NCBI GenBank assembly: GCA_001655205.1
Contig: LPNZ01006180.1
Coordinates: 1 to 41,682, forward strand
Direction of reading: 5' to 3'
DNA from: Lenisia limosa
Lineage: Eukaryota; Protista; Breviatea
DNA length: 41,682 bases
Shown: piece after piece, positions 27,515-36,666 of the stretch
Layout of the letters: each line of letters begins with the position of its first letter
Position numbering within the stretch: the first letter of the stretch is position 1
Notes under the pieces: generated by a model
Told to the model about the DNA's origin: nothing
The model's database searches: none
What the model saw: the letters and a program-made list of their open reading frames with translations, nothing else
Translations under genes and position numbers: made by a program

Positions 27515-27689
27515 CGTGGGTTTTTTTTTTCTTTTATTTTTGTTGTCTCTTGTATTATGTTATATTTTTTTTGAGTGAATTTGGAGACCAGCACAATACC
27601 AGCGAAATATATAGAAAGAACAAAAGTAAATAGAACTCAGAAAAAATGAAACAAGATCTCCCACCACGGAAGACCATCAAACAAAAGCA

Positions 27690-30600
27690 TCACCCAGTGG
27701 TGAAGCTAAGGGGGATGAAGCCCTCCACACCCTCTATCCGGGCCTTAACCCAGCCGTCAGTTTCGTTCTGTAATACAAATGAGAGGGTTTACAAGATCAT
27801 CATGAGAGGCATGGGGACATGAGTGTTCCGCTTACATCATCTATGAGATCAATTATGGTGCCTTTTGAGAATGGCAAAGTCCCTTCTCCGTCTCCCTCAA
27901 AGTCGAAATTAGCCTAAAAGTGTGTCAGTTTTATTTTCTTTGCAAAGAAATCGACTATGTCAGAAATGCCTTACATACCGTTACAGTTCGTACCACAGGG
28001 CCAGCCCCCAGAGCGAAAAGAAGTTCCGAAGACAGCGGCGTGTCAGGCTGGATATCGACGTTAATGGGCTCTTCGTCGAATTCTTCTGTAACCGTTTCGT
28101 TGTTCGACCTAAAAGGTCATCAATGCCATGTGTGTCGGCTACCGTTGTTCAATAAATAAGATTGGAAAGAATTGGAATAATCATATATCATATACTACAT
28201 ATCATATATTATGTACAACTATAGGATGAGATTTGTTGTGTGTATCACTAGAAGAATACCCCCCTCCCCCAGATCCACGCTGACATTGTTTCGAGGTACG
28301 GGGTCTGGGGGTCTTGGGAGATTTTGGGCTTCAGTTGGGGGGCTACGGGGTGAGAAAAGGTACTTGAATAGATAGGGAAAATGCTATTAGAAACAATAAT
28401 CTCAGAGTTGTAGGAAGAGCTTACGGGCAGTTGTAGGCTTAGGCTTATCTAAACTGGTTAGCATAGAGAATCCAAAAATGAAATGCTGACAATAGTGCTT
28501 TAGTTTTTGGAGCGAAATGCACTCACGGGGAATGTAGAGGCTTTGCATTCTGTTGGACTGAACTATATCGCGTTCCGGGATGGCCATTTTAAAAGCAGGT
28601 TCGTTGGGGTCGGGTTTCTCCTTGAAAGTTACATTGTGGAGCAAACGTTTATGTATTACATAGCCCATATCATTGTGATAGAGGTTATTGATTGATCAAA
28701 ATCATACCTCAACAGGGGTGAGAAGCATGACAGAGTCACAATCTCGGAAGGACTTATCGGAAAAGGCCTTGTATCGTTGGTGAGGCGCTTTCTTTTTGCG
28801 TCCAATGCAGCACTATACGTCAGTCAAAGGAAATAAAGGAAAGCTAGACTTATTCTCTTTTGGATTAGAGTACGAGAAACATTTTTGATGATAGATCATC
28901 ATTCTATCATCCTTTGAAACCTGACGCCGCACCCACCTTGATCACGATCACCAGGACAAATGCGGCAGCGAGGCCGCCGGCAATCCACTTCCAGGGTATC
29001 GACCTTCCCGATGACGTGTTATCCACAATGATAGTGGACTCCTCCGGGATAGGATCAATCAGATTGGGCGGCACGTCAGCATCTGGGTGTGGTAAATAGG
29101 ACAGCCAGGTTCAATCATATCATAATGATGTTCTTGATGCTGCTCCATGATATATATTGTAGATACCAAGTGTTCAAATATATTTCGGATATTGAAACGC
29201 AAAAAGAATAGGCGCTGATAGGGGCGAACCTGAGGAGAAGGACAAAAGGACGCGGTCATCAGAGTAGTGCACGCCGCCATCAAGAGATACGGCAATGAAC
29301 ACAGAGCGTGATGACGACATTTCGGGAAGAAAACAGTCGATTGTGGTTGGGTCATCTTTGGCATCCTCTTCTTTCACCTGGATAATAAGCGGTCTTCAAT
29401 CTCTTTTCAAAGGAAGTAGAAAAGAAAAAAAACTAGAGCGGTAATCCAGCTCTCACGGTGATTCGGCCATTTGTCACGATGTTCATCTCAGTATCCAAGC
29501 CATATCGGCATTTGATCGAAGGTTGTGCAATGTTCGTTAAACCGGTGCCGAAGATTTGGACCAAATATCTTGGGGAATGAGAAATGCGAATTATAGAAAA
29601 TGCTCCATTTAAATATGTACGTAAACAAAGCTTGACTGGAGGGGGAAAGCCCTGCAATAATAATGGGGGAAAGAAAGAAAGAAAGCCACAACCCGCGGAC
29701 TTGGTAGCATCGAGAGGGACGTTGTCGGGTTCCACAGTTGTCACCGATGGTAGGCCGTAGAGCTAAAGGGTTAATGACATACTGTCAGAAATAGCCCATA
29801 AAAATACGGCTATTTACCACTCACTGTGATTGCTGGCCCCTTTGCTCTCCTCCTTGAATGCGAAGGGAGGAGGTCATCCTCGGACACTGCAACAGTCTAA
29901 AGAGCCATAAGACAGCCTAAGCAATAACAGCATTCACCATCTATCACCGATAATGTTGACTCTGGTTTCATATTGTCCATTTTAACAATGTCAAAAGGCA
30001 CAGAATTAACAAGGTCTCTTTCAAACCTAGAAGAAATCCATTCCAGAGCTCACTCACATATTTGCCTTGATCGAGAACAGTCTTGACAGGGCAGCTAAGA
30101 CCCGAGGCCACCAGAGAGCAATCTCCGGATGAAACAGTTGCGGTGCCGAATACAAGCTTGTAGGTTGAGCCCGCCTTCGTCTCCAGCTCCACATCAACTG
30201 TCGTTGACTCTCCGACAATGAAGTACTGCGGAGTAAGAGATTCAAGGCTGGATATGAGCATTTTCCAAATCCTGAATCATATTACTGCTTTCTGGTATCT
30301 TTGGGACCATTGGGGAACCCTCATCAGAAGTAAACAAACAAAGAGCATTAGCTTCAAGAGAAGAGCATTCCTTCTGTTGCCCTACCTTTTGAGAAATGGA
30401 CGAGACTACTGGGGATACTTGAACCTCACCGGCTGGGTCCCTGCAGCTTCCAGCATCGCAGCTGAGTGGTCAGACTTTACTCTCTAACCACCCTCATAAA
30501 TGTAAATGTGGTCAATCCGATGCGTTGCACATTTGAATTATGCACATTTGAATTAAAAATGCAAAAAAAGTACAACCAAAGTAACCTACAGAAAGCTGGA

Positions 30601-33600
30601 GTCAAGACAATCCACGCCGTCGCTACATTGCGAAAGACACTCGGATCCTTCGGTGTTACAAGTCAAGCCGTGACAGCTTGTTGTTGGGCTAAAAGCGGTG
30701 ATGGTTTATGTCTGTTGCTACATTTGAACAGTGGACACAGTCTAATGAATAAAGTTTCCCCAAGGTCCCAAAAATAAAAGTCACGGAAGACAATGGGATA
30801 ATAGTAAAGCGTTTTAGAAAGCTCACGGAGGCGTGCAGGCGCCATTGACACAGAAGCTGTCGCCTGCAAAAGCTCCAGCGCTGCACTGGCCTGAACTGCA
30901 ATGAGATCCGTCTCCGATGGCTTGGCAGCGGCCAGTTGAACACGTCATGCATTTCTAAAGGCAATCAGTCGACCATCAAAGAGTGGATTCGAAGCAAAAA
31001 AAAAATGTCAAGAATGGAAGAAATAATGCTTCAGCAATATTGCCTCATTTGCCACACAAGGGTGGTTACCAGTTTGTAATGCACTGCCTACCCCGGTACA
31101 CGCAGTAGCACAGCAGACGCTGGAAATACAGTTTCCACTGGCACAGTCGTTGCTGATGGTGCACTCCCCGCCATCAAGCTGACTTGTGACAACAAGAAAA
31201 CAAAACCTACCACTTTGCCTTCGGGACATTCGACAAATTCGCAGCTTTGTGAGGAAGCAGGCTTGGTTCCGGAGCAGTGGAACGGGCTTGATAATCAGAA
31301 ACACAAGGTACAATACATAACCGTAATCATGGGTTGAAATTTGACGTGGTGCTTTAAGCCCAAAACGATGATAGTTGCTTACGATGACGCAGTTGAGCTG
31401 TCGCGAACACACGTTACGTCCCTTGTTTGCGTACGGCCGCCCCCACATGAGGGTGAGCATTCTGACCACTCGTACGCCTTCCATTCATAGACCACAGCTG
31501 GGTACGTGAGAAAATGGGAATGGGTTCTGTTGGAAAGTTATCTACTACTAAAAAAAATCAAAGAATTGACGGAAAGAAAACAGAACAGATATTCCCAAAA
31601 CACATCTTCACTTTTCTTCCATAAATCGACAAAATACTCGTTAAGATCAATGATTTGCTCGTCTTTATGTAACTACAAAAAGCACAACACGGACGCACCT
31701 TGACACTCCGGGACGGCACTCCAGGACCCGCTGTCACACACCATATCGGTGACGGTCCCATCCGGGCCATCGGAAGTACTGCGGAAGCCTAGAGATAAAA
31801 CGAAAACCATAATAGATTGGAGAGAGGTGATCTTGGGGAGGTGTTTGGGATGGAGCAAAGAACCATCACGAGCAGGTTAGACACAAACCAGTTTTGCACT
31901 GCACTTTGCAGACATGGCCATTGGCCACGAGGCCCTTGCACGTCGTTGTGGCGTGGGCTGGCGTATCGAACGTTTGACATGATGTCGGTTCTGCTTGAGA
32001 TCACACCAGTATTGGAATAATATTGGCTGATGATTGTTGGTATAGTGAGACCAGCTTGTAATATTCACTCCTCTCCTCAAACTTTCACAGACAATAGCTT
32101 CGCTCCAAAAGCCGTACTCCGTACACGTGACCTCCTTTGTTTTTATCACTTCGGTTCCCTGGAAAAGTCAAGACTCTACTGAAGAGCTGTCGAGCAAAGG
32201 GTTTCTGATGAACACGTAGATGACAATCACTCCCTCGGCGCCAACTTCGACAACAAAACCGTCATTGCAGGTGTAGAGACAGGTATCGCCCTCATCGGCA
32301 CCCTGGCACCCCGACGCGGGTGTCGAGTGCGTCCCATTTGGAGGCATACCACAGGTCACGTCTACATTCCATCACTCAGTAGTCCTTGTTGCTCTAAATA
32401 TGCCCGAATATCTCAAAAAAAAAATCCTCGCTAAACATTGATATAACCGTTTTGAGGCACATAACCCACCTACCGGGACAAGGGGTGGCGATCTCGGACC
32501 AAACTGACGTTTCCCTGGGGCACGTCGTCTCGCGATGTGATACATCTTCGGAACAAACAAACGTGCATGATCGTGGTGGTGGCCCAGAGGAGCAAGTCAA
32601 ACCCGCGGCCTATGCATATGAAATCTCAAGATCTGACACTTTCGAACCTCGATCGCTTTCGATATATGCTGGTCTTTTACCCAACCCCTACCTGACTGGA
32701 GCCATGAAGAGACGGCGGAGCAGGGCAGTCGGCACATTTGGCCTCATTACAGGACTCGCTGCTAATCTGGGGTTGGGGGGTAAAGACCACTTATAATTCT
32801 AGGGTTGGGGGGTAAAGACCACTTATAATTCTAGGGTTGGGGGGTAAAGACCACTTATAATTCTAGGGTTGGGGTGATCCATTAGTTCCTTTGAAAAACA
32901 AGGTGAAGCAATATTATGCTATGAAATATTTATGAGCTTACAGGCTTGTCATCAAGACACCTTGATTCGTCAACATCAGCACCACTTGCCTGACACGCCA
33001 CCTAGGAGGTTAAGGGGACTTCTCATCGGAGCAAAAAATAGACATCTAATTCCTTTGCTCTCCGTTCGACCCCCCCCCCCCCCCNNNNNNNNNNNNNNNN
33101 NNNNNNNNNNNNNNNNNNNNNNNNNNNNNNNNNAGTAAAAAAATATTTAAATAAAAATAAAAAACGATTTTGTGAAGTGTGTGAGCTTACCTTCCAAGTT
33201 CCGCACTCTAACGAGGCGCAGTTTTCGGAGGCACTGGGTTTGGAGTCTGCAGGGCAATTGGAGTTATCGACAACCTTATTATCATGGTCAAGGCAGGTGA
33301 CTGTGCGTGATTTAGTGCGTGATCCACAAGAGGGTGCGCAAGCTGACCATGGTGTTGTCTGAGGGAAGTGAAGGGATAAATGGAAGCAGGTCTTCCATGT
33401 TATTTCCTTTATCATAACCCAATCAGTGAAGTCAACTCATCACACCAAGAAACTTGAAAGCGTCATTCAAGTTTTTATCATTGATTATCTATTTACTCAC
33501 ATTCCAGGTGTAACACTTGGGAACGGTGCAGCTTTCAGAAGAAGACGGTTTAGCAGCCTGGCATTTGCTGTCTGCAACAACCTTGCTCTGTTGAGGGGAT

Positions 33601-35541
33601 ATCGGGTAAACAAAAATTCTGACTGTGACAAGCCTGTGAAATGCACAAGACCCAGGCCTACATCATGATCAACACATGAGACGCTGCGTGTTCGTTTCGA
33701 CACGCCGCATTCAGCATCGCACTGCCCCCATTCGCCAACCACCCAGTCCGGACAGACAAACTCTCTGCAGTTCTGCGAGGATGCCGGTTTAGTAGCGTCA
33801 CACTCCGAATCAGCAACAACAGTGTCCTAATATGATAAAACAATCTTAGCTCCAAATATAGATATTTTCAAATACAGACTTGAAGAATAATAAAAGCTTG
33901 GCTCACCGTGTGGTCTTGACACGTGACCTCCCTGGTCTGGGTGCCACCCTCACATTCTACTGAACATTCACTCCAAGCTGTCGTCTATATTTGGTGACTA
34001 TTAAGGGGTGACAAACCCTCCAGCTGGGACAGTCGAACGTGTTACAATTTTGGGTCGTTGCTGGTTTGGCAGTTGTACATTTCGAATCCACAACAGTGTT
34101 ATCCTAAAACTGTCAGAGCAGGATTGACCTTTGATAGTTTTCTTGAAATCACCTGTTTGGGTGGACATACATATATCAGTTCATAAAGCATCTTGAAAAT
34201 AACTTAATGAAATCATGTAATAATGCATAACAAGTAACAAAGGCAAACCTGGTAGTCCTTACATACGACACTCCTGCTCTGGGTTCCACCTGCACAATCT
34301 TTGGAGCATGCTGACCACTCCCCAATCTAGAGAATGATCCCGTGTGTGTGTATGTGGGTAATGTTAGATTTATTTGTACTTCAAAAACCAATAGATACTA
34401 ATATAAACGTGTTAATATTCGACTACTATTCACAATAATCCTTCAATAATAAAACAAAGGAACTTCAACACTGCTGCAATTATGATATGAGATGATAATC
34501 ATATGTATTCAAAGGACCTGATCAACAATTCTGCCCACCAGCCAATCCGGGCAACTAAAGGTGTTGCAGTCGTCAGATGAAGCCGGCTTTGTAGCCGTAC
34601 ACTGACCATCATCCACCTGGTTGCCCTCATAATCTTCACACCAAACCTAGACAATAACATTATGTTCAGAAAAGGACAAATTCCTACATTTCTCGTTTTA
34701 GTACCTCCATCACACTCTTTGCTACACACTGACCAGAAGTCCGTCTAAACAGTAACCTAGACGACATAAAGGCTGAACCAACCTCCCATGTGGGACAAGC
34801 AAACGCATTGCAAGCTTTCAATGCTTCCGGCTTGGAATCCGCACATTCAGTTTCAGCAACAACTTCATCCTAATCGATTACACAAAAAAATAATTTTGAA
34901 GTTCTGTTTACCTCTGTATTTTGGAAAAGATTTATCTTTTTAGTCTCAAAACGTATCAGCTGACAGGATAGATTTATTTTTTTAGTCTCAAAACGTATCA
35001 GCTTACAAGATAGTTTTGGCATGACACAGTTCTTGTACTGGTTCCAGTTTCACACGGTTTGGAACAGACGGACCAGTCGGTTGTCCGCCACGTGGGACAG
35101 GCGAAAGTGTTACAGTCCTTGGTTATGGCCGGCTCAGGGGCGGGACAGAGGTTGTCAGCCACTTGCTCACCTTCGTCATCTAAACAGTATACCTTCAACG
35201 GTCAACATTTTTGCTTACAGTACTAATACCAATAGTAGCTAGTTTTNNNNNNNNNNNNNNNNNNNNNNNNNNNNNNNNNNNNNNNNNNNNNNNNNNAGAC
35301 CAGAGCGCATACTAAGAGGTGACATATAAATCCTGTATCCCAAAAAAGAAGGAACTAAAATAAAAAGAGAAACCCCTTCTCAGTGAAACCAATCCATTTG
35401 CATTACATCCAACTCACACTCCACGAGTATGCTGAAGCCTGGAAAGTGAGAAAGGTAATAAAATAAAGTCCTTCCACTTACCTGTTGCAATGTTAGCGAC
35501 AAAAGTAGAAATAGAAGTAGCTGGAAACCCCTTCGGAGCAT
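27690..35541 (-). CDS. Type I membrane receptor: signal peptide, TSP1 repeats, Sushi/CCP-like modules, TSP1, Cys-rich repeats, IPT/TIG, TM, Pro-rich linker, cytoplasmic SH3
   Basis: Signal peptide MLRRGFQLLLFLLLSLTLQQASA (ATG 35541). At least 7 readable TSP1 motifs (e.g. WSVCSKPCETGTSTRTVSC, WSACSKDCAGGTQSRSVVC, WSECSVECEGGTQTREVTC, WSECSPSCGGGRTQTRDVTC). Sushi-like CGMPPNGTHS...GDTCLYTCNDGF and CDSGSWSAVPEC. Cys-rich CASGNCISSVCCATACTG. IPT-like YGLPSVTTVEP...IFGTGL...IKCRYG...DCFLP...VSLDGG. TM WIAGGLAAAFVLVIVIK (28940-28987). SH3 ANFDFEGDGEGTLPFSKGTIIDLIDDNETDGWVKARIEGVEGFIPLSF (27690-27915). Confidence 0.85.
32769..32874. repeat. 32-bp G-rich tandem repeat (about 3.3 copies), telomere-like and G-quadruplex-prone
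   Basis: The unit gggttggggggtaaagaccacttataattcta starts at 32770, 32802 and 32834, with a partial copy at 32866. It abuts the 3' splice site of an intron of the minus-strand receptor gene. Confidence 0.92.
34929..35012. repeat. 42-bp tandem duplication spanning an intron 5' splice site
   Basis: gatttatctttttagtctcaaaacgtatcagctgacaggata followed by gatttatttttttagtctcaaaacgtatcagcttacaagata. On the minus strand this gives tatctt|gtaagc followed 42 nt later by tatcct-gtcagc. Confidence 0.88.
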
Positions 35542-35860
35542 CTCAATCTACATGAATACGTGGCAACCCAATATAAAAAAAACAACAATAGAATTAACTT
35601 TTCTGACTTTTTACTCTTGATTAATAAATACCTTTGGTATTACGTATATTTCCTTCTTACTACAGCGAAAGAGGGGTGTGTATTTGTTTTTTTTTTTGTT
35701 TTTGTTTTTTGTGTTTAAAAATTGATAATATATAGACCCCAAGTGGGTCTAATCCGAATCGTCTGATTTTTAATCCGAATTGGTACCCCGAGGTACCCTG
35801 TTTAGCATTTAAAGATTTTTTTTTCATTTTTTTTTTTCATCCTACCGCTTAATATTGAAG
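35542..35860. promoter_or_regulatory. Putative bidirectional promoter between the receptor gene and peroxiredoxin
   Basis: 319 bp separate the divergent ATGs. The interval contains a palindrome agaccc-caagt-gggtct (35734-35750), taatccgaat twice (35750, 35771) and ggtacc twice (35782, 35792). Confidence 0.4.
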
Positions 35861-36666
35861 ATGCTTGCTATTCAGAAACCCGCACCCGAGTTTGAAGGCA
35901 CCGCCGTCATGCCTAATGGCGAGTTCAAGACCATCAAGCTCTCTGACTACAAGGGCAAGTACGTCTGCCTCTTCTTCTATCCCGCTGACTTCACGTAAGT
36001 GGAAAATTGATTGAAACAAAACCTTTCTTTTGGTTTCCTTATATTACCTAGTCCTTGAAATCATTTTTTCAGTTTCGTTTGCCCCACTGAGATCATCAAG
36101 TTCTCTGAGATGGCCAAGAACTTCCGTGAAATCGGCTGCGAGGTTCGTGGCAGAAATACTGCTTTTGAAATACCGCGCCTTGATGACGAATCCCGTTACT
36201 ATTTTAGGTTATCGGTGTTTCTACTGACACTGAATTCGTTCACCTTGCCTGGACTGAGGTTCCCCGCAAGCAAGGAGGTCTTGGTAAAATGGACATTCCT
36301 CTTCTTGCTGACCCTGCCCACAAGGCTTCTAAGGCTTACAACGTAAGTGGTGAAATTATATTCACGTGTTGTCAACCCTGGGCATTCTTTCCCTTTAAAA
36401 TTCATAACTCTCTTTAGGTTCTCCTTGAAGATGGTGGAGTTGCTCTCCGCGGTATGTTCATCATTGATGGTGAGGGTATCCTTCGTCAAATGACCGTCAA
36501 CGATCTCCCTGTTGGCCGCAACGTTGATGAGGCCCTCCGTCTTGTCAAGGCTTTTCAGTTCACCGACGTCCATGGCGAAGTTTGCCCCGCCGGATGGAAC
36601 CCCGGAAGCGACACCATGAAGCCTGACCCCAAGGGCTCCAAGGAGTACTTCAATAAGGCCAACTAA
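35861..36666 (+). CDS. PRDX1: Typical 2-Cys peroxiredoxin (Prx1/AhpC-TSA), 4 exons
   Basis: Exons 35861-35994, 36073-36142, 36208-36342 and 36418-36666 give [16 protein letters not shown]...[14 protein letters not shown]...GGLG...LRGMFIID...[34 protein letters not shown]...KEYF. Peroxidatic and resolving cysteines and the GGLG and YF motifs are all present. Confidence 0.98.

Follow-up and report, generated by a model that had tools for sequence, protein, structure and literature searches.

The locus examined here raises the question of whether a single gene of Lenisia limosa, a protist of the Breviatea, encodes a membrane receptor that carries adhesion modules outside the cell and an SH3 domain of its own inside it. 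The window, meaning the whole stretch of DNA analysed, comprises 41,682 nucleotides of contig LPNZ01006180.1 (assembly GCA_001655205.1). A minus-strand gene was found to run on it from 35541 to 27690, with at least 41 exons and approximately 1,285 codons in the spliced model (Table 1). The gene is genuine and spliced, comes from a single-celled eukaryote and encodes a long, predicted cell-surface protein built from adhesion modules of animal style.

Gene model, splicing and expression

Seventeen GT-AG junctions on the minus strand were obtained from RNA contigs of a polyA library, fourteen of them from spliced contigs and three from loose contig ends. A single open frame of 816 codons was found to connect, with consistent phases, the 25 exons that lie between 32766 and the stop codon, and the ten TSP1 exons upstream form an open frame of 367 codons in which every site is GT-AG. 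The visible frame is unbroken over approximately 1,257 codons and 41 exons. Introns verified by RNA all measure at least 62 nt, while seven of the predicted introns are merely 26-43 nt in length. The gene is expressed, with an RNA depth of 37 on the tail versus 6.4 upstream and a 3' UTR that extends past 27600; no RNA contig was identified on positions 33134-33590 of the TSP1 array.

Table 1. Features of the spliced gene model (positions in the window; exons listed in the direction of transcription)
Feature	Extent	Strand	Exons	Support or remarks
Exon 1: start codon and hydrophobic core of signal peptide	35482..35541	-		predicted; donor CAG/GTAAGT
Exon 2: predicted 21-nt micro-exon	35418..35438	-		AG acceptor, GTGAGT donor, phase 0
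Exon 3: TSP1 repeat 1, first half	35219..35311	-		holds assembly gap 35247-35296
Ten phase-0 exons: TSP1 repeat 1 second half, repeats 2-7, T-W-K of repeat 8	33191..35192	-	35192-35007, 34869-34783, 34744-34688, 34646-34539, 34326-34249, 34103-34017, 33984-33907, 33826-33662, 33587-33501, 33358-33191	predicted splice sites
TSP1 repeat 8, visible end of first-half exon	33044..33133 with gap 33085-33133	-	33084-33044 (visible)	
TSP1 repeat 8, middle (V-A-C ... K-P)	32942..33001	-		AG acceptor, GTAAGC donor, phase 0
TSP1 repeat 8 end and Sushi 1 start (C-P-A-P-P)	32692..32766	-		donor junction to 32609 from RNA loose end
Sushi 1, remainder	32474..32609	-		both junctions RNA-supported
Sushi 2	32083..32361	-	32361-32246, 32158-32083	acceptor 32361 from RNA; inner junction predicted
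Sushi 3	31699..31993	-	31993-31889, 31788-31699	donor 31699 from RNA loose end
TSP1 repeat 9	31214..31497	-	31497-31383, 31286-31214	junction 31383/31286 RNA-verified; Pfam 33.9 bits
Cys-rich region, approximately 135 residues	30386..31178	-	31178-31092, 30954-30827, 30688-30590, 30461-30386	open frame, fitting phases
Beta-sandwich-like module 1	29825..30225	-	30225-30058, 29896-29825	all junctions RNA-verified
Beta-sandwich-like module 2	29230..29762	-	29762-29701, 29568-29457, 29377-29230	all junctions RNA-verified
Stalk and single transmembrane helix	28937..29082	-		acceptor RNA-verified; donor AAG/GTGGGT predicted
First tail exon	28708..28812	-		acceptor TATAG/; RNA over 28762-28708 and donor only
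Further tail exons	27979..28620	-	28620-28527, 28448-28425, 28342-28285, 28108-27979	one RNA contig, depth 37, over all
SH3 exons and stop codon	27690..27913	-	27913-27836, 27767-27693; TGA 27692-27690	junctions RNA-verified

N-terminus and TSP1 array

The signal peptide named in an earlier, sequence-only reading of this DNA was recovered. The ATG at 35541, which has an in-frame TAG two codons upstream, opens a typical signal-peptide sequence with a predicted A-S-A cleavage site that depends on the predicted exon 2. This exon codes for the A-S-A signal-peptidase site together with the first Trp of TSP1 repeat 1, and with it the W-x4-W spacing of the other repeats is restored in repeat 1. Exon 3 reads Y-A-L-W-S into Ns; past them the frame is open, and it would be preserved provided that the gap is truly 50 nt. 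A predicted intron of 26 nt (35193-35218) may follow this exon, at the place before V-x-C that introns also occupy in repeats 3 and 8.

When exon pieces were compared with Pfam, matches to TSP1_ADAMTS (PF19030) of 43.4, 41.8, 34.1, 33.9, 33.6 and 31.6 bits were obtained, all above the gathering score of 23.8 bits. The array has a regular period of 55 residues, with six complete units of 54-55 residues in register, and its tandem units share a six-Cys pattern, begin with W-x4-W-S-x-C and have an Arg preceding V-x-C. The ADAMTS-type TSP1 array proposed previously is therefore confirmed and consists of nine repeats, eight in tandem and one past the Sushi modules. In repeat 8, the frame that follows the gap at 33085-33133 reads G-G-V-E-R-R onwards to the donor GAT/GTCTAT, and a predicted intron of 42 nt precedes exon 33001-32942, the motif of which fits the V-x-C ... 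C-x3-K-P of the other repeats. A direct splice from 33191 to 32766 across this gap would be in frame and was rejected because two exons were found in between. The acceptor of exon 32766 adjoins a tandem repeat of 32 nt x 3.4.

The signal peptide leads directly into TSP1, with no prodomain, metalloprotease or disintegrin. The protein has no protease head, since an in-frame stop lies upstream, a divergent peroxiredoxin gene is situated 313 nt from the gene start and the HExxHxxGxxH zinc-protease motif is absent from all six frames of the window. Furthermore, no exon piece was found to match reprolysin in Pfam.

Sushi modules, Cys-rich region and membrane-proximal modules

Sushi-like modules were also identified, of which Sushi 2 is backed by both Pfam and the PDB. 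Its first half scored 16.5 bits against Pfam Sushi (PF00084), for which the whole-domain cut-off is 20.7, and in the PDB its exon halves matched CCP modules only, namely those of DAF (E value of 2.8e-5) and, for the second half, beta2-glycoprotein I (0.003). Sushi 1 was assigned from its Cys spacing and W ... P-x-C motif, which fit CCP, exon 32474-32609 alone having no Pfam match. Sushi 3 was assigned chiefly by pattern, with weak matches of its second half to factor H CCP modules (E value of 0.19). The Cys-rich stretch, likewise seen previously, is present and unclassified, with no family match for its exons in Pfam or the PDB; the junctions 30590/30461 and 30386/30225 were obtained from RNA.

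Close to the membrane, where IPT/TIG domains had been proposed, two beta-sandwich-like modules are present. Their identity as TIG was not confirmed, as no match to IPT/TIG (PF01833) was found in Pfam or the PDB with the exon pieces of either module, and the nearest named ESM Atlas clusters for the last exon of module 2, which carry PF01833 TIG at scores of 0.82-0.88, serve as a lead only. Exon 30225-30058 gave no usable ESM Atlas match, and a word search with positions 29436-29762 (two exons) gave no match. An exhaustive search with the largest membrane-proximal exon among 1.84 billion representatives, a library that excludes the proteins of this genome, returned four matches. Three of these were repeat or secreted proteins of bacterial type (DUF11, SdrD-B, RTX/M10) and the fourth was without an informative family; thus no eukaryotic relative of this exon was identified in the library, nor was a TIG match.

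Transmembrane helix, cytoplasmic tail and SH3 domain

One transmembrane helix is coded at approximately 28993-28940, in agreement with the earlier reading. It corresponds to a single Kyte-Doolittle hydropathy peak (2.55), with Cys-Cys and a basic cluster (R-K-K-K) downstream of the hydrophobic helix. The signal peptide, the one helix and the positive-inside residues fit a type I single-pass topology. The tail of the model has 188 residues and carries the SH3 domain at its C-terminus. It also includes a disordered stretch and motifs resembling YxxPhi and acidic di-leucine, with Cys-Cys, the basic cluster, YKAF and DSVMLL located on its first exon.

The SH3 domain is split across exons, the first of its strands lying at the end of exon 28108-27979. 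Its two halves, scored one by one against Pfam SH3_1 (PF00018; whole-domain cut-off of 22.9 bits), gave 17.4 and 15.6 bits and aligned in register to positions 2-28 and 28-47 of 48, thereby spanning nearly the whole profile and upholding the claim of a complete C-terminal SH3. Of 47 weak matches of these halves in the PDB, 46 were SH3 domains (E values from 0.014 to 1.7), the best being those of Crk and Grb2. The ALYDY-like motif, the conserved Trp and the P-x-x-Y/F motif of SH3 domains are represented by A-N-F-D-F, G-W-V and I-P-L-S-F. The proline-rich linker PPTEAQNLPRPPDPVP had to be rejected because the sole open frame reads otherwise in exon 28342-28285; the stretch arises when the spliced mRNA is read in frame 2 across this exon and is absent from the protein. 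The suggestion that the receptor inhibits itself via its own PxxP had rested on this out-of-frame stretch and was abandoned. The true tail contains just four PxxP motifs, all of them minimal and none flanked by basic residues.

Alternative readings of the locus

With regard to the proposed join of the SH3 exons to the transmembrane exon, RNA links the SH3 to the tail up to 28762, while no RNA contig bridges 28762-29024 and the upstream contig stops near 29024. It is conceivable, although unlikely, that this region separates two transcription units, one for a TSP1-Sushi membrane protein that ends shortly past the transmembrane helix and one for a short, more highly expressed transcript of a soluble SH3 protein, which would begin near 28760 and start at a Met in exon 28812-28708. 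The tail RNA contig does end at 28762, leaving 50 nt up to the acceptor uncovered, and is sixfold deeper than the upstream contig; positions 28800-28999 are without any RNA contig, and read-through past the transmembrane donor meets a stop within 10 codons. However, coverage holes and a 3' bias are expected of a polyA library at approximately 6x depth, and the frame is open for the 17 codons from the tail acceptor to the start of the RNA contig. In addition, the transmembrane exon (donor AAG/GTGGGT) joins the tail exon (acceptor TATAG/) in phase 0, and Cys-Cys with a basic cluster is the usual sequel of a transmembrane helix. Judged from frame and splice sites, the transmembrane exon is very likely to be joined to the SH3-bearing tail.

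Two assembly gaps, 35247-35296 and 33085-33133, both conceal coding letters, each within the N-terminal half of a TSP1 repeat. The former interrupts repeat 1 past Y-A-L-W-S, and the latter conceals an acceptor and approximately 12 codons of repeat 8. The DNA contigs of run X2 stop at 32799 and 33134, and in the interval between these positions Ns occur along with a tandem repeat and a poly-G run, as might be seen if the scaffold were chimeric at the gaps and the TSP1 array above 33134 came from another gene than the Sushi-transmembrane-SH3 part. This is very improbable, given that TSP1 repeat 8 crosses the gap with strand, order and phase kept (first half to 33044, middle at 33001-32942, end at 32766) and that the missing acceptor is supplied by a loose DNA contig end, the letters of which at 33134 show a pyrimidine tract followed by TTTAG and the beginning of an exon. 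By domain logic, the model fits a frame that continues across both gaps. Just as improbable is a decaying, functionless copy of an ADAM-type gene that has lost its head: the protease and disintegrin parts are missing and the 5' part is weakly expressed, but the frame is intact over its visible codons, the gene has its own start codon and signal peptide, and its transcript is spliced and polyadenylated.

Comparison with known proteins and proposed role

No description of this architecture, or of a receptor-borne SH3 in protists, was found in the literature. An SH3 domain in the tail of a single-pass protein does have a precedent in yeast Fus1p, which acts in mating cell fusion; this type I transmembrane protein has been described as carrying a proline-rich region and, close to its cytosolic C-terminus, an SH3 (PMC2063912). 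This precedent tempers the novelty of the tail SH3, single-pass topology and tail SH3 being common to both proteins. The Fus1p ectodomain has, to our knowledge, no TSP1, Sushi or beta-sandwich modules.

Among animal proteins, ADAMTSL proteins and papilin resemble the present protein in their ADAMTS-type TSP1 arrays, to which no catalytic domain is attached, and exist beside protease-bearing relatives. They are secreted matrix proteins not known to have a transmembrane helix or an SH3, both of which are found in the present protein. Animal THSD7A and semaphorin-5 resemble it in being type I membrane proteins with an ectodomain that is mostly a TSP1 array; we know of no Sushi module or tail SH3 in either, these being features of the protein described here, and semaphorin-5 additionally has a Sema head. 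Apicomplexan TRAP and MIC2 are also TSP1-bearing single-pass adhesins, with a short tail coupled to the actin system, but they differ in having a vWA domain and, in place of the SH3 found here, an acidic Trp tail. No match to the vWA/I domain of the TRAP family was identified in Pfam on any exon piece at E values up to 1.

The product would be a type I membrane glycoprotein of approximately 1,285 residues with a cleaved signal peptide, in which eight TSP1 repeats, three Sushi/CCP modules, TSP1 repeat 9, a Cys-rich stalk, two beta-sandwich modules, the transmembrane helix and the SH3 tail would follow in order. Its long, rod-like ectodomain may touch ligands on surfaces or bacteria, and the SH3 in cis may draw proline-rich proteins of the cytoskeleton or of endocytosis to the site of contact, by which recognition would be coupled to actin or uptake with no kinase involved. 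Prey recognition, likewise proposed previously, would be a possible role. The kinase-less surface receptor proposed previously fits the spliced model in its adhesion modules outside and its SH3 at the tail end, and has lost its PxxP self-inhibition. On balance, we consider it probable that the locus is one gene for a kinase-less type I adhesion receptor whose SH3 in cis would couple recognition to actin or uptake. A broader scheme, in which the surface receptors of this lineage, ADAM-headed or not, would each bring along an SH3 adaptor, so wiring contact to actin or uptake, and in which the present protein would be a host-side docking receptor for bacteria living on the cell surface, is speculative and should be regarded as doubtful.

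The host lineage is the sister of animals, fungi and apusomonads, and it is reported to be without FAK and Src. With this gene, a protist near the animal-fungal root would possess TSP1 arrays, Sushi modules of the complement type and an SH3 borne by a receptor, and modules associated with matrix and complement in animals appear already to have been combined freely there. The gene also provides an expressed, concrete candidate for the way in which such cells, lacking tyrosine kinases for the task, may sense surfaces or partner bacteria.

Transcription, splicing and gene model

The window was found to be eukaryotic and intron-rich, with the motifs listed in an earlier sequence-only reading lying in stop-free pieces of the minus strand. 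A public study provided a polyA RNA run, whose contigs were placed on 27600-33590, and a DNA run in which 96% of sampled words were present. Within this range the contigs contained 14 skips, each bounded by GT..AG on the minus strand (14/14), and further GT-AG junctions were recovered from three RNA loose ends after a 2-nt ambiguity was resolved. The resulting 17 junctions, which define introns of 62-201 nt, show the receptor gene (35541-27690, minus strand) to be transcribed and spliced. It is a real, expressed and unusual adhesion-type receptor gene.

The gene model, built from RNA junctions and predicted GT-AG sites, consists of 41 minus-strand exons. It starts at the ATG at 35541, with an in-frame TAG two codons upstream, and its A-S-A cleavage site lies in a predicted 21-nt exon. 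The ten phase-0 exons between 35192 and 33191 read as one frame of 367 codons in which the TSP1 period is strictly 55 residues, and a single frame of 816 codons extends over the 25 exons between 32766 and the stop codon (TGA, 27692-27690). The visible coding sequence amounts to 3,776 nt and the protein to approximately 1,285 residues including hidden parts. Seven introns are predicted to be short (26-43 nt), compared to 62-201 nt for those verified by RNA; three of the seven, in TSP1 repeats 1, 3 and 8, share a position immediately before V-x-C.

Short introns predicted in the receptor gene
Feature	Position	Strand	Basis
GT-AG intron	35439-35481	-	prediction
GT-AG intron	35193-35218	-	prediction
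GT-AG intron	34745-34782	-	prediction
GT-AG intron	34647-34687	-	prediction
GT-AG intron	33985-34016	-	prediction
GT-AG intron	33002-33043	-	prediction
GT-AG intron	31179-31213	-	prediction

Exon sequence could be read on both sides of each of the two assembly gaps, so that coding letters are hidden in both. The gap at 35247-35296 interrupts the exon for the N-terminal half of TSP1 repeat 1, which runs as Y-A-L-W-S into the Ns; downstream the frame is open as far as a GTAAGC donor, and a true gap length of 50 nt would preserve it. The gap at 33085-33133 comes after the donor at 33190, and the loose letters of a DNA contig at 33134 show a pyrimidine tract, then TTTAG and the beginning of an exon. 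Past this gap, TSP1 repeat 8 is completed by the end of this exon (33084-33044) and, across an intron of 42 nt, by a 60-nt exon (33001-32942). Coding continuity across both gaps fits the domain logic, and is supported but not proven. A run of 15 Gs (33070-33084) directly follows the second gap; part of it would account for two adjacent glycines in a TSP1 repeat, with the remainder possibly a sequencing artefact at the contig end.

Extracellular domains

Pfam, PDB and other searches were performed exon by exon, and the scores given are those of exon-sized pieces. The proposed array of ADAMTS-type TSP1 repeats was confirmed by many Pfam matches of up to 43.4 bits (cut-off 23.8). For the Sushi-like modules, a half-domain Pfam match was obtained, and the identity of Sushi 2 is solid at the sequence level, its two half-exons matching the CCP proteins DAF (2.8e-5) and beta2-glycoprotein I (0.003), respectively, in PDB. 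Sushi 1 and Sushi 3 were assigned from the spacing of Cys, Trp and Pro along with weak matches. No family in Pfam or PDB was matched by exons of the Cys-rich stretch of approximately 135 residues.

The two membrane-proximal modules possess beta-sandwich-like sequence patterns. Their previous designation as IPT/TIG could not be confirmed, as no IPT/TIG match was found in Pfam or PDB at the exon level, and the link of one exon to TIG clusters in Atlas (0.88) falls under the trust threshold of that tool. The largest exon (30058-30225, minus strand) had relatives only among bacterial repeat and secreted proteins in a search of 1.84 billion representatives, with DUF11 and SdrD-B beta-sandwich repeat proteins ranking first. 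It aligns with six successive DUF11 repeats of one bacterial protein at 32-39% identity, with the motif G-x-C-S ... L-x-C in common; this likeness may stem from remote common descent or from beta-sandwich repeats having converged.

Membrane helix, tail and SH3 domain

A single transmembrane helix was identified, as had been claimed, with a hydropathy peak of 2.55 and followed by C-C-I-G-R-K-K-K. The C-terminal SH3 domain also stands. Its two exon halves match SH3_1 of Pfam in register (positions 2-28 and 28-47), and their 47 PDB matches are, with one exception, SH3 domains, Crk and Grb2 being the best, making this sequence-based identity solid. The spliced mRNA has only one open frame. The Pro-rich linker PPTEAQNLPRPPDPVP was rejected, as it belongs to another frame of exon 28342-28285, one in which a stop precedes it by a few codons, and the suggestion that the SH3 domain is autoinhibited by its own PxxP is thereby removed. 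The tail of 188 residues contains four minimal PxxP motifs, one YKAF motif and one DSVMLL motif, short sequences that could occur by chance.

The SH3 exons are probably joined to the transmembrane exon (29082-28937). The donor of the latter (AAG|GTGGGT) and the acceptor at 28812 (TATAG|) give a phase-0 join, the 17 codons upstream of the tail RNA contig are open throughout, and the sequence across the join reads like an ordinary stop-transfer signal. That contig (depth 37) links seven exon segments between 28762 and a point past the stop; a second (depth 6.4) links six and runs from 30151 to about 29024. Against a single transcript are the 262-nt stretch between them (28762-29024), for which no RNA contig was found in the polyA run, and the six-fold depth step at this boundary; both also fit the 3’ bias of a polyA library. 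We consider it quite probable that the transmembrane and SH3 exons share one transcript. No RNA contig from this run was found for 33134-33590 either.

Relation to known proteins

The design is a variant on known kinds of protein, with the link between membrane helix and SH3 likely but unproven. THSD7A and semaphorin-5, which are membrane proteins with TSP1 arrays, share part of it, as do TRAP adhesins and the protease-less ADAMTSL proteins. FAK-Src has not been detected in Breviatea. In yeast Fus1p, another type I membrane protein, an SH3 domain is found close to the end of the cytosolic tail (PMC2063912). Breviates, whose member L. limosa bears Arcobacter epibionts, branch as sister to the opisthokonts and apusomonads combined (PMC12453579). 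No description of the whole TSP1-Sushi-TM-SH3 combination was found in the literature.

Neighbouring gene and repeats

Upstream lies a divergent peroxiredoxin gene (35855-36666, plus strand) with AhpC-TSA and 1-cysPrx_C matches. The two genes probably share a bidirectional promoter region, because their starts are 313 nt apart. With this gene upstream and a zinc-protease motif absent across the window, the receptor gene has no ADAM head.

An intronic tandem repeat at 32766-32874 (32-nt unit, 3.4 copies, 98% alike) extends as far as the acceptor at 32766. A 62-nt DNA contig maps to it at doubled depth, and 32799 is where the main DNA contig breaks off. A 42-nt unit in 2.1 copies (34928-35017) lies in the intron that follows exon 35192-35007 and overlaps the last 11 nt of that exon. 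At 28177-28217, also intronic, a 33-nt piece recurs with two mismatches in two more contigs of the same DNA run, and is probably a short dispersed repeat.
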